From: Haliotis rufescens
Taxonomy: Eukaryota
DNA length: 64,000 bases
Direction: 5' to 3'
Assembly (NCBI RefSeq): GCF_023055435.1
Contig: NW_025964223.1
Location: 44,020,001-44,084,000, forward strand
Shown: positions 14,625 to 61,885 of the stretch, one piece after another
How positions within the stretch are numbered: the stretch's first letter is position 1
How the letters are laid out: each line of letters begins with the position of its first letter
The notes under the pieces: generated by a model
The model's database searches: none
What the model was told of the DNA's origin: nothing
Seen by the model: only the letters and a program-made list of their open reading frames with translations
Translations under genes and position numbers: made by a program

Positions 14625-17599
14625 ATGGACGTATTGTTGACTCTCGTTGTCCTCACACTGCCGTCAGTAAGCTCAGGTAAGATTTCAGCCATATACTAGC
14701 AACTTATACACTGTGTAACAGGCGCTCAGTCAACATTGCTCGTCATGTGTCAGTGATCTATATATACTGGTTTTGTACGTATGCCACCCAGACATTAGGT
14801 TATCTATCGGTGTGTAAACTATCTACAAGTGAGTAGATGTCCGAGTTGCTTATAAAGACCCCTGATAGTTTACACGTTTTTATTTGTTGAACGAGTTCAT
14901 TGCAGTACATATGCTAAGTGTTCTATAAAATTTGAGACTCTATGTGTTGTTAGTCAGAGAACATAATAAGATCTAATAAAATGTGTAATGGGCGCTCAGT
15001 CAAGCAGTCAACGAGGACCATAAGCCACTGTGTTTGACATCAGTATATTTTTACCCAACGGGTTAGAAATAACGGCATTCGTAAATATCGTATGTCCACT
15101 CAAGAGAATGCTCATCTTATATCAACTGAATTGTTTTACGATATAAGCACTAGAGGTTTTAGAACTCGGGACGTATGAATTGTATGTGGTTTTGTAAGTA
15201 CATTTATATGTGAAGAGGCTTGGGACAATAATCCAAAAATGTGTATCTGGGTTTCTGTTTTATGTGTACTTGAAGTAATGTACCTCCATGTAACTGTTGG
15301 GTGTGGTAATTAAATCATAACGGTTGATTTACTGTCAAGGTCTACAGACCTGCTCTTCTGGGACCGAGAACAGCTCTTCTGGGACCGAGACCAGCTCTAA
15401 CCAAGTCATACTGGATGTGTCTTCAGCTCAGATCAACACAGGGGGGAAGGATGTGTTCCTGTAGGCTGACTGTTTCACAGACAGCACAGGTGGAGATGTT
15501 CCCTATTGGCTGGTCACAACAGTGTGATACATACATGACTATACAGAGGTGGAAAACGAGTACACAGTGTACAAATGGTGTTGTTCAAACTCTAACACTG
15601 TCTAAAACTGTCCCCACGGGTGAGGAGATTTGGATACTGGTGGTGGCTGCAAGACCTGGAGCCAGACTGTTGGGGCAGCTGCTGCTCAAGCTTAAGTCAT
15701 CATCAGGTATGTACACACACACCTCAGATTAAATAAAAATGGTTCTATCATCATCAATCAAATAGACATCTGATCATGACATGTGTTTACTTCCATGTAT
15801 GTTATATTCAGATCCCATCACTTGAAATATAATAATCATGATTCAATGACAGCACTTAAATATTGAGGAGTAGTTTGTGTCCTGAAGCTTTTATTAAGTC
15901 AAGTAACATGCTCAATGAAGATACTCGGTATGGGGTTGAGGTATGGCATCAACAAAGTATAGCTAAACAAAGTAATATGACAAGACCCAAATGCAATGTA
16001 GAACATGTGTGCCTCAATTAAACTAAAGTTATTGTGACATAAATAGCAGTTTGGCTGGGGAATCAAGGGCGGATCCAGCATTTTTAAAAGGGAGGGTTCC
16101 AAAATATCAAAACGCTCTCAGATAAATTTCTGCCTACAACATACTACATTTGGTTTTAAACAGACAAGCTTTCTTTAGAGTGCTTTGAGCCAAACACCAA
16201 CGGTTCTACAACCAATACTCCCTCAACAACCATCCAAACAACCCAGCCAATGACAATGACTGCTGATGCAATTACATCCTTATTAACAACTACAAAGGGA
16301 TGGACCAGACCTAAGCCGAATACAATCAATACTCCCTCAACAACCCAAACAACCCAGCCAATGACAACAACTGCTGAGGCAATTAATTACATCCTTATTT
16401 ACAACTGCAAAGGGATGGACCAGACTAAAACCTAACAGGCGCACAGAATCATTCACAGCTATTCCATACGAAAGTCACAGTCAACGTCAAAGTGAAACGT
16501 CTCCTGATTCTTTCAGTAATAGACCTAATATGGCTAACTGTACTTGCAAGAGTGTTCAACCATGTGGTGCAGTTGGCCTATCTGATGGCAGTCAGGATGT
16601 TTTCCCAAGTATGACATTTAACACATGAGTGAGTGAGTGAGTCTGTTTGATATTACGCTGCTTTCAGCAATATTCCAACAATATCAAGGCGGGGGACACC
16701 AGAAATGTGGTTCACACATTGTACCCATGTCAGGAATCGAACTCGGGCGTGACGAGTGAACGCTTTAACCACTAGGCTACCTGACCACTCTTTAACACTA
16801 TGATGGAATTTATGGTTTCAATCGAAGCTTTCTATGTCCCTTATATTAATCAATCAGATTCCACTTCTCTTATTACCTGCACTTGCTTCAAATAAAAAGA
16901 AGGCGCCTAGTCAAGACGATCTGATCGATAATCAAAATCTATATTGTAATCAAACGGTTTTTTTCTCTCGAGGTGCATCAAATAATGTGAGCACCTTGAT
17001 TAAAATCATAAAAAGATTTGGAAAAGATTTGGAAAATATCTGTCAATGCCCAGCTGATGGTACACAACATTTTGGTCTTGACAATCATTTTGTTTATAAT
17101 TACAGGTGACATATTTGCTGCAGGAATAGCCACTGGTGGCGGAGTGGCCATTATAGTTCAAGTCATCTACTTCTTCATCATAAAGTATGGACCATTCACA
17201 GATTTTCCATTTATTCTCAATACATCCACAAAAGGGTGTTACAAAAAATATTCATTGTATATGTCATTTACTAGCAATATGATGTATGTAAGATATATGT
17301 GTACATTTCACAAACATCATTCCTGTCGTGTTCATTTTGTGAAATGTGCTATAGATGAAAACAATAATTCTATGTCAATACTAGTGAAGGTTCCTTTGTC
17401 TCACATCATGCGTATAACTCTGACATATTCCAGACCAAGATGCAGGACATCCTGCCGTAAGAGTCCTGCTGACTTCCCTGTGTCTGAGGACCATCCCACG
17501 TATGCTGGCTTCAGCAACAGAGCTGTGGATACAGGCAACAACTATGATGTACTTAGTCCTGCACAGGTCATCACCAACCCCTACACGAATGAACAATAG
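14625..17599 (+). pseudogene. Receptor gene 1: type I membrane protein (Cys ectodomain, Thr-rich stalk, TM, Tyr-motif tail) with two frameshifts
   Basis: Exons 14625-14676 (MDVLLTLVVLTLPSVSS, donor gtaaga), 15340-15706 (Cys domain, clearly paralogous to 26586-26945), 16164-~16515 (KLSLECFEPN + stalk with a duplicated T/P repeat), 17106-17184 (TM IFAAGIATGGGVAIIVQVIYFFII) and 17434-17599 (tail with YAGF, YDVL, NPY). Lesions: an extra G in the G6 run at 15441-15446 and a 4-nt AATT duplication at ~16381-16388. Corrected length ~336 aa. The exon 3 donor is the least certain boundary. Confidence 0.75.
16625..16790 (-). mobile_element. SINE family B
   Basis: Reverse complement of family B with (GAGT)n. 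Confidence 0.75.
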
Positions 17600-19064
17600 A
17601 TACAATCTGCAGTGTGTGCTGTTACTATTAACTCTCACTTCCTGTTCCAAACTACTACTGACATTCTCCTCATGTTCAAGTTAATTCTTATTAGTGTTTA
17701 GCCTGTACACGAGGGTGGTACTTGTGTTGATAAACAGATGTGTGAACAGACACAGTACATATTAGTTAAAACACATTGTGTTGTATATGCTGCACAAGAA
17801 CAAATGTGATAAAGATACATTAAGACACTCATCCAGATCATAATATAGTTTTGAGCCTTCACAAAATGTTTTGCAGAATCCATGTTTAATATATATATAT
17901 AGAATGGAAAAAGACATGTGTGCACATAAACATACACCTTGTCATGTCAATGAATGTCAAATGAAATACCAGTACACTGTCAGGTGGACACACAGCTAAA
18001 AGAGTGGTGTCTGTGGTAGACTCGGATTGAAGTCAGTGCCTGATAGGGAGTGGAGGGTATGGGATTATCACTAATAACATGGTGCCTGTGCCAAGACAGG
18101 GATAATAATGAGTGTAGCATGGTACACACTGCTTCAATTCAAAGAGTTGATGTTCATCCATATGCAAGATTCAGCTTTCAATAAATATTACCAATATGCT
18201 ACATATTATAACCCTAATAACAGTTGCTGAATTGTGCATCCTGGAGCTTACCTACAGACTGATTGTATTGTAGAATCAGATAAAAACATCCAAACAATTG
18301 GAACAAATATTTATTCATATAATTTGAAACAAAAATTGTGAACAAACTTAAGAAAGATATTTTTGTGAGATTTCCTATGCATAGTTTCTACAACATTTCA
18401 TTTGTAGTGATATTATATTCAAAACCTGTTATGAAAAATAAATGAAAATAAACAACCAGCAAACTAGTTTTTACATTCTTTGCCCAAATTACTCATATTT
18501 CTATTTCACTTTAATGTTTCACATCTTTTCTCATACGACATCTAAGCAGGAACATGTGCGGAATCATCATAATAAATTCAGAGGCATGTAAGACACTTCT
18601 GACCACTAATACACTGCTGTACAGTCTTCTATCTGTGTGACCTAAAACAGAAAGAAACTGGATAAAACAAACATCTTTTGTTCTTTTGTTTTTAAAAATA
18701 CTATCTAAATTACAAATCAATAATTCATATTTCTTTGATACTTAAAGTGTTACAATGTTTCCTTGTCATGGATATGTTGTTTGTCATGTCAGCTTCATGA
18801 CGACCATACCATAGTGCACTGGGTCCACACCAGTTCCATACAGATGAGACTTCTGATGTAAAGATTCTGCTGACACTAAAAAATGATCACAGCCAAAAAC
18901 ATAAATTATATTATTCCTTCTGCAAATTTTTGAATTCACCACAAAAAGCAAATGAGTGATATGTGTCATACTACAAGACCATAGTTTACAATAGGTGACA
19001 TGATAAGCTAAACTGACATAACATCTGTTATGACTACAGGTAAGGATAGATGTCTCCAGGCAAG

Positions 19065-61600: not shown

Positions 61601-61885
61601 CCTATCCCAAAACCCATTGCCACAAGCACCCCTTACAACCCAACCACGTACCGACTGACCTACACCCCAGGTGTCACGTCTTTGCCAGGGGAGGTAACTA
61701 CAAGGAAGACCTACGGTCCGACCACCGAGACGACGCGCACTACAACAGTCTACACGTACACTGGCTTCCCCAACAGTGTCAGTCAGACTGCAAGTGAGCC
61801 GATGTTTAAAGTAAATGTTGTCCTTATTGTTCTGTATACCTTGCTTGGTGCTTGGCTTACATCGCCCATCTGTGGGAGTAAGTAA
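52660..61885 (+). CDS. Receptor-family gene 3: ~270 aa cell-surface protein (signal, Cys ectodomain, Thr-rich stalk, C-terminal hydrophobic segment; GPI-anchored or tail-less)
   Basis: Exons 52660-52732 (MTSCCSAKSLMFLVMLITWTYQVN, gttagt), 57990-58019 (30-nt micro-exon GQGCPSSAAP; strong pyrimidine tract, gtatgt), 60245-60574 (ADMCSG...NCTCSL...YCVDIKANPSPG, gtgagt) and 61506-61885 (GSITTVQLVC + T-rich stalk + VNVVLIVLYTLLGAWL). All introns phase 1; 813 nt open. The 3' end may splice further. Confidence 0.75.
53030..53345 (-). mobile_element. SINE family D, diverged
   Basis: Matches 6165-6510. Confidence 0.7.
54720..55345 (+). repeat. Degenerate ~32-bp satellite
   Basis: Recurrent gagatgctggtttagagag...cagatta units. 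Confidence 0.7.
56873..57141 (+). mobile_element. SINE family A with an expanded (AAAC)n tail
   Basis: caacccatgcttgtc...ggtggtcaggctc...; microsatellite at 57094-57141. Confidence 0.75.
58090..58236 (+). repeat. ~35-bp minisatellite (~4 copies)
   Basis: Unit aattaaggggccccacaaccagcagatattggcag. Confidence 0.85.
60547..61331 (+). repeat. 63/64-bp minisatellite (~12 copies) derived from the exon 3 end and splice donor of gene 3
   Basis: Unit gacatcagggcatctccttcacctggag|gtgagtggtcatatcttagtgacagaccagtgtatt; the first copy overlaps the coding exon. Confidence 0.95.

Follow-up and report, generated by a model that had tools for sequence, protein, structure and literature searches.

The stretch of DNA analysed here (hereafter the window, 64,000 nucleotides) covers positions 44,020,001-44,084,000 of contig NW_025964223.1 of the red abalone, Haliotis rufescens, and contains three genes (genes 1, 2 and 3) for putative cell-surface proteins with a six-cysteine ectodomain. 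An earlier inspection of the letters alone (the sequence-only reading) had taken them for a cluster of three co-oriented receptor genes with a common ectodomain and contrasting signalling ends. The three genes are all real and have one orientation, but they do not form a three-gene cluster, as 9 domain exons of the gene 1/2 type and 19 of the gene 3 type are found on the same chromosome. The family to which they belong is real and undescribed, and by sequence searches it was found only in Haliotis. The gene models were rebuilt manually from the sequence and compared with annotated Haliotis proteins (P0001-P0019), and in the case of gene 2 also with spliced contigs. Spliced models were searched one exon at a time, and full-length database orthologs were used in place of joined models. 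Features within the window are given in window coordinates (Table 1).

Structure of the three genes

The shared exon organisation proposed in the sequence-only reading stands for genes 2 and 3, whose domain exons (360 and 330 nt) are of phase 1-1, but not entirely for gene 1, whose domain exon begins in phase 1 and has a length of 367 nt that is not divisible by three. The proposed cysteine pattern, C-x(23-33)-CxC-x(21-23)-C-x(14-15)-C followed by a cysteine at the start of the stalk exon, was found in all three genes, and it is the beginning of the following exon that supplies the last strand and last cysteine of the domain. As had been supposed, the ectodomains of genes 1 and 2 are paralogous (BLASTP 55% identity, E 4e-28). 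These two genes belong to subfamily A and gene 3 to subfamily B of the family described below.

The signal exon of gene 1 and its promoter are about 80% identical to those of seven upstream paralogs. The frame set by this signal exon gives the N-terminus of the family and then reaches a stop at about 15462 within the domain exon; for the remainder of the domain it is the next frame that is open, and one extra base in the run at 15441-15449 splits off the N-terminal part. The intact H. rubra ortholog P0011 reads I-N-T-G-G-G-I-C-S-C at the point where gene 1 shifts frame. The second frame break, in the stalk exon, is a 4-nt insertion within a repeated unit of about 130 nt. Because these two frame breaks are independent, gene 1, a subfamily A member, is probably a pseudogene in this assembly. 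In the intron 3' of the stalk exon, a tRNA-like sequence of the short interspersed element (SINE) type, recognised by eye only, follows a GAGT microsatellite (16630-16790). In addition, positions 21200-21400 of the window show a contig depth in the hundreds of thousands and many rearranged joints in all four runs, and this segment looks like a highly abundant, transcribed repeat.

The spliced contigs used for gene 2 are Logan contigs from small runs. Contigs from the runs X1 (record 7) and X2 (record 14) splice position 23694 to 26586 with GT..AG ends and exit the domain exon at 26945, where the X4 contigs of a third run, which cover the domain exon, also leave it. A homology search with the signal exon of gene 1 found no family-type signal exon between genes 1 and 2. 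Thus, gene 2 has its own leader exon, which is a new acquisition not homologous to the family signal exon, and this is the reason why the search for its signal exon by homology failed. The domain, stalk, membrane-span and tail exons of gene 2 are all collinear with the H. rubra protein P0008, and runs X1-X5 contain about 60% of the words of its tail exon. Gene 2 is a transcribed, divergent member of subfamily A; for its transcription it is the canonical spliced form that argues, the RNA nature of the runs being a guess. Over exon 1 of gene 2 (23399-23696), 9 of 298 positions in an X8 contig deviate from the window, to which X1 and X2 are identical; this suggests an allelic or population divergence of about 3%. 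The long introns of gene 2 carry the remnant of a hAT element (with a match to its dimerisation domain) and two copies of the Tc1/mariner type (helix-turn-helix and DDE_3), each broken across several frames.

The H. cracherodii counterpart of gene 3 (P0014, 353 residues) and its counterparts in H. rubra and H. asinina were found with an alignment query, and a protein search with the open frame of the gene 3 stalk gave no match, as a length rule probably hid the 353-residue ortholog. To place the exons of gene 3, the proteins P0014, P0017 and P0018 were aligned by tblastn to the window and the 30 kb downstream of it. Gene 3 had been read as lacking a tail, but its hydrophobic "C-terminus" extending to 61885 is read-through beyond the splice donor at 61794 into the intron. 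Because of this donor and of the membrane-span and tail exons that lie 2.8-4.3 kb past the window, gene 3 is not tail-less; it belongs to subfamily B and encodes a membrane span and a tail of 87 residues. Both downstream exons are intact and 96-100% identical to P0014, and they rule out a glycosylphosphatidylinositol-anchored or tail-less form of the protein; an alternative short end lies immediately 5' of the tail exon. This case illustrates that read-through of a splice donor can make a membrane receptor look like a decoy. The intron after the domain exon begins with a minisatellite of about a dozen units of about 64 nt, each comprising the last 12 codons of the domain exon and the GTGAGT donor; at least seven in-frame copies were matched by tblastn, and the minisatellite supplies many decoy donors to this intron. 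The only assembly gap listed in Table 1 interrupts no coding exon of the present gene models.

Table 1 Exons of the three genes and other features of the locus (window coordinates; the last two rows are counted from the window end)
Feature	Position	Strand	Remarks
Gene 1 signal exon	14625-14676	+	Phase 1; matches signal peptides of P0001-P0005
Gene 1 domain exon, 367 nt	15340-15706	+	Frame break at G6AA run 15441-15449; 21-nt tandem duplication at 15353-15394
Gene 1 stalk exon, 445 nt	16164-16608	+	Second frame break, stop near 16433 (three-frame translation, tblastn with P0011)
Gene 1 membrane-span exon	17106-17184	+	81% identical to P0011 membrane span
Gene 1 tail exon	17434-17599	+	Resembles the tyrosine-based activation motif of immunoreceptors (ITAM-like): YAGF-x10-YDVL, then NPY
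Gene 2 exon 1 (5' untranslated region and own leader)	23385-23694	+	ATG 23610, 28 codons, hydrophobic core, phase 1, donor after 23694
Gene 2 domain exon, 360 nt	26586-26945	+	Phase 1-1; at 26945, contigs from three runs end or are spliced
Transposon remnant, gene 2 intron	28353-30749	-	
Transposon remnant, gene 2 intron	32977-34088	+	
Gene 2 stalk exon	35810-36133	+	Last strand with Cys (KLNIECFE), then Ser/Thr/Pro-rich stalk
Transposon remnant, gene 2 intron	36463-37442	+	
Gene 2 membrane-span exon	38079-38154	+	82% identical to H. rubra P0008
Gene 2 tail exon	38483-39302	+	272 residues; five D-hydrophobic-Y-A-x-V motifs; C-terminal S-T-D-L; collinear with P0008
Assembly gap	46625-46775	.	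Intergenic: gene 2 stop (39302) before, gene 3 exon 1 (52660) after
Gene 3 signal exon	52660-52732	+	Phase 1; 92% identical to P0014 start
Gene 3 micro-exon, 30 nt	57990-58019	+	Phase 1-1, GQGCPSSAAP; AG and GT borders; tblastn with P0014
Gene 3 domain exon, 330 nt	60245-60574	+	Phase 1-1, subfamily B; 100% identical to P0014
Minisatellite, gene 3 intron	60575-61331	+	Repeats domain-exon end including donor
Gene 3 stalk exon	61506-61793	+	Donor GT at 61794
Gene 3 membrane-span exon	window end +2761 to +2841	+	Outside window; tblastn with P0014
Gene 3 tail exon	window end +4009 to +4269	+	87 residues, 100% identical to P0014; outside window

Size, turnover and domain of the family

When the domain exon of gene 2 was searched against the genome, nine full-length tandem copies, all on the plus strand, were found at 43.935-44.047 Mb together with degenerate partial copies. 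Subfamily A thus consists of 9 domain exons, two of which are broken. The domain of gene 3 alone gave weak matches, yet these were open phase 1-1 exons of 309-336 nt with the same six cysteines, and profiles built from gene 3-type exons recovered 19 subfamily B copies at 44.08-44.87 and 47.13 Mb. These genome searches with the domain exons and their profiles, a check that had been recommended, bring the total to at least 28 domain exons in the two subfamilies, an array that extends over about 1 Mb, and all six cysteines are kept in 26 of the 28 copies. The family is therefore multi-copy and not single-copy, the outcome that had been named as speaking against the sequence-only reading. No consistent candidate for the signal exons of subfamily B was found within 1.5 kb upstream of each domain exon. 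The annotated protein XP_046363306.2 (P0002) maps 84-89 kb upstream of the window, four of its five exons being 98-100% identical and the remaining one 90%; its position is exactly that of the first array member. Outside the genome, the gene 2 exon was compared with 1.84 billion representative proteins; this returned 8 matches, and all seven that were looked up are from Haliotis (H. rubra, H. rufescens, H. cracherodii and H. asinina) and are named "uncharacterized" or bear automatic mucin names, in line with the lineage-restricted cell-surface family that had been expected. Nothing on this family was found in the literature.

The family has grown by tandem duplication with gene loss. Besides gene 1, another array member (43,993,396-43,993,730) is broken by a 4-nt deletion in the domain exon within an ACAG repeat, and it suggests a birth-and-death turnover of the array. 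Most upstream paralogs (43.945-43.996 Mb) are flanked by degenerate half-copies of the domain exon, several of them with stops, the N-terminal half lying about 0.9 kb ahead and the C-terminal half about 0.1 kb behind. The H. rubra protein P0001 has two complete tandem domains, and the half-copies may have been left by an ancestor with two domains. Open frames with weak similarity to subfamily B (E 0.009-0.015) were also seen at 44,098,412-44,098,579 on the plus strand, 14 kb past the window end, and at 47,078,818-47,079,120 on the minus strand, and these may be further divergent members.

For the domain itself, which has about 125 residues and six cysteines, a confident model was obtained that is beta-rich and best matches CUB domains, in agreement with the beta-rich, possibly CUB-like domain foreseen from the sequence. 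The predicted structure is a ten-strand jelly-roll sandwich of about 110-125 residues, as expected of the CUB fold. The cysteine spacing (C4 to C31/C33 and C57 to C72) likewise fits CUB, but the domain has six cysteines.

The relationship between the two subfamilies is distant. BLASTP of gene 3 against genes 1 and 2 gave no match, and an hhalign comparison with a 7-row alignment of subfamily B was not significant (E 0.096); significance was reached only with a 15-row alignment, which gave E 4.6e-4 over 80 columns with the CxC and the third and fourth cysteines aligned. None of 300 column shuffles reached the value of 26.0 (mean 11.8, standard deviation 2.6, maximum 24.6). The motif A-G-x-L-N-[IL]-x-C-F follows the exon boundary both in gene 2 and in the subfamily B protein P0013, and the subfamilies agree in exon phases and sizes. 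The domains of P0002 and P0014 also agree in their three nearest unnamed clusters of the ESM Atlas, after which come CUB and CRF-BP clusters; we take this agreement as a lead only. The profile-profile match, the boundary motif, the exon phases and the ESM Atlas neighbours make it likely that the domain of gene 3 and that of genes 1 and 2 have a common origin, and that gene 3 is, as suspected, a distant paralog.

Tails, selection and possible function

Classification of the tails, another of the checks suggested with the sequence-only reading, gave an ITAM-like tail for gene 1, a Y-A-x-V array for gene 2, and two Y-D-N motifs and one Y-T-T-L for gene 3. Seven upstream paralogs have a near-identical tail with HPTYSGL, ten residues, YDII and a terminal NPYINV, so that ITAM-like tails occur in eight array members, seven with YSGL-x10-YDII and gene 1 with YAGF-x10-YDVL. 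The consensus Y-x-x-[LI], spacer 6-12, Y-x-x-[LI] is present in the seven upstream paralogs and in orthologs, and is absent from genes 2 and 3. In a genome search with the tail as query, the ITAM-like tail exon was found in this array and nowhere else. The stalks and tails of genes 1 and 2 had been said to look unrelated. The tails in the window are indeed not significantly similar (E 8.5), but the first 12 residues of the two stalks are common (E 5e-4; gene 1 starts with KLSLECFEPN), and in orthologs of the gene 1 and gene 2 types a collinear alignment continues across the membrane span as far as the proximal tail, a shared origin of the proximal tails being visible in ortholog alignments only. 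The alignment of the gene 2 type with the ITAM-type members reaches the first tail tyrosine and the following E-E-P; thus, judged from these sequences, the distal tail of gene 2 looks like an expansion by repeated duplication of Y-A-x-V and not like an unrelated module.

Whereas the tail is conserved, the ectodomain is either free to change or driven to do so. Comparison of the five youngest intact paralogs gives the domain exon a mean nonsynonymous divergence (dN) of 0.108 and a synonymous divergence (dS) of 0.139 (ratio 0.78, with some pairs above 1), and the tail exon a dN of 0.022 and a dS of 0.085 (ratio 0.26); these are pairwise dN/dS values from small samples. The dN/dS check proposed earlier has thus separated a variable ectodomain from a constrained tail among young paralogs, and strong conservation of the tail motifs is seen both between paralogs and in four species.

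We consider, with a probability of roughly 0.6, that the three genes are members of a Haliotis-restricted superfamily of type I membrane glycoproteins in which a CUB-like domain on a mucin stalk is joined through a membrane span to a tail with tyrosine motifs. A typical member would have a signal peptide and one six-cysteine CUB-like domain carried on a Ser/Thr/Pro-rich mucin stalk, followed by one membrane span and the tail. From this architecture only, we infer that a ligand is bound and that phosphotyrosine signalling follows: the CUB-like domain, which the stalk would hold exposed, could bind an external protein or glycan ligand, and clustering would let Src-type kinases phosphorylate the tail tyrosines. 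YxxL-x10-YxxI might then recruit a Syk-type kinase with tandem SH2 domains, Y-x-N might recruit Grb2-type adaptors, and the array in the gene 2 tail other adaptors.

Several observations weigh against this interpretation. No Pfam family was obtained for any exon even at E up to 10, and the CUB profile (PF00431) in particular matched no domain exon in the same Pfam search; profiles A1 and A4 matched no PDB sequence, CUB chains included. Of the suggested structural check with AlphaFold and Foldseek, the first part yielded the confident CUB-like model, but Foldseek against the PDB gave nothing below E 1e-3, and the model of the gene 3 domain (AlphaFold, 7 rows) is unreliable, with a predicted local distance difference test (pLDDT) of 46; because of this low value, its fold matches, which are generic jelly rolls, are not evidence. 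HMMER profiles of subfamily B do not detect subfamily A exons. The spacing of 10 in the ITAM-like tails exceeds the 6-8 of classical ITAMs, and the first +3 position of gene 1 is F. Finally, automatic NCBI names label some members as mucins. These names (integumentary mucin, mucin-21-like and mucin-5AC-like) and the long Ser/Thr/Pro-rich stalks with internal repeats would suit epithelial membrane-tethered mucins, in which the stalk would be the functional part, serving as barrier, lubricant or anti-adhesive, and the domain and tail would be minor or structural. We regard this explanation as doubtful: the stalks, though Ser/Thr/Pro-rich, have about 50-150 residues and are short compared with true mucins, and the retention of six cysteines by nearly all copies of the N-terminal domain and the conserved tail motifs with their dN/dS of 0.26 also speak against it. 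No SEA or other Pfam domain was found in the exons scanned.

The sequence-only reading itself had favoured a paired receptor system as in KIR, LILR and SIRP, in which gene 1 would have an activating, gene 2 an inhibitory and gene 3 a decoy end. The ectodomains of genes 1 and 2 are alike with differing distal tails, ITAM-like tails do exist, and the ectodomains evolve faster than the tails, all of which agrees with such a system; but no immunoreceptor tyrosine-based inhibitory or switch motif (ITIM, [ILVS]-x-Y-x-x-[ILV]; ITSM, T-x-Y-x-x-[VI]) was found in the tails of genes 1, 2 and 3 or of P0001-P0019, and K, R, D and E are all absent from the three membrane spans. Since no tail has an ITIM, a paired activating and inhibitory system is not supported. 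Moreover, gene 3 has a membrane span and a tail and is no decoy, gene 1, the ITAM-like partner, is broken as assembled, and the gene 2 ortholog aligns with the ITAM-type members through the proximal tail. The activating, inhibitory and decoy trio was therefore abandoned, and we consider a paired system very unlikely. A fast-evolving locus for self/non-self or gamete recognition, following the logic of Hydractinia Alr or of abalone fertilisation proteins, would account for a large tandem array with pseudogenes, for an ectodomain dN/dS near 1 with some pairs above 1, and for the confinement to one genus. Nevertheless, relaxed constraint explains a pairwise dN/dS near 1 equally well, and abalone are not colonial, and we hold this possibility to be highly improbable. 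Within the preferred reading of a Haliotis-restricted glycoprotein superfamily, one may speculate further that abalone possess a diversified recognition repertoire of about 28 genes whose variable module for ligand binding is a CUB-like domain and not one of the Ig or lectin type, that subfamily A is wired to an ITAM-like motif in the same chain, and that these proteins are innate immune or self/non-self receptors of haemocytes or epithelia in one gastropod lineage; this extension is tentative and, as a whole, unlikely.

Comparison with known receptors

The domain of this family has in common with canonical CUB domains (PF00431) the jelly-roll and the cysteine spacing, namely 26-29 from the first cysteine to the CxC and 14-15 from the third to the fourth, and differs from them in that the Pfam model is not matched and two extra cysteines are present. 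These extra cysteines are the second one of the CxC and either the stalk-exon cysteine in subfamily A or a last-strand cysteine within the domain exon in subfamily B. As for the whole protein, DCBLD2/ESDN is a vertebrate scaffold receptor of the same layout, with a CUB ectodomain, one membrane span and a tyrosine tail. CDCP1 (CUB domain-containing protein 1) is likewise a type I glycoprotein whose ectodomain is CUB or CUB-like and whose single membrane span leads to a tail with several tyrosines; these tyrosines are reported to be phosphorylated by Src-family kinases and to serve as docking sites (PMC4395315). Unlike CDCP1 and DCBLD2/ESDN, to which no sequence similarity was detected, the abalone family has a single six-cysteine CUB-like domain on a mucin stalk, is encoded in a tandem array of about 28 genes, and has different tail motifs (ITAM-like, Y-x-N and Y-A-x-V).

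Invertebrate immune and recognition repertoires are mostly known from immunoglobulin (Ig), lectin, leucine-rich repeat and fibrinogen-type modules. In molluscs, the oyster receptor CgIgR is an ITAM receptor that signals through Syk and is reported to interact with a Syk kinase (PMC6994640). It resembles the abalone proteins as a type I receptor of a mollusc with the ITAM consensus in its tail, and the abalone ITAM-like tail fits the consensus given in that paper (Y-x-x-L/I, spacer 6-12, Y-x-x-L/I; PMC6994640); it differs in having five Ig domains instead of one CUB-like domain and a stalk, and a spacer of 8 instead of 10. With KIR, LILR and SIRP, the abalone family shares clustered, rapidly duplicating genes and similar ectodomains on differing tails, but it has no Ig domains, no ITIM, no charged residue in the membrane span by which an adaptor could be paired, and no decoy member. 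If the predicted signalling is true, a large, fast-turning array of CUB-like receptors with its own ITAM-like motif would be a further scaffold beside these known systems, and its members would be candidates for studies of haemocyte signalling and for disease-resistance mapping in abalone, a farmed and endangered group of molluscs.

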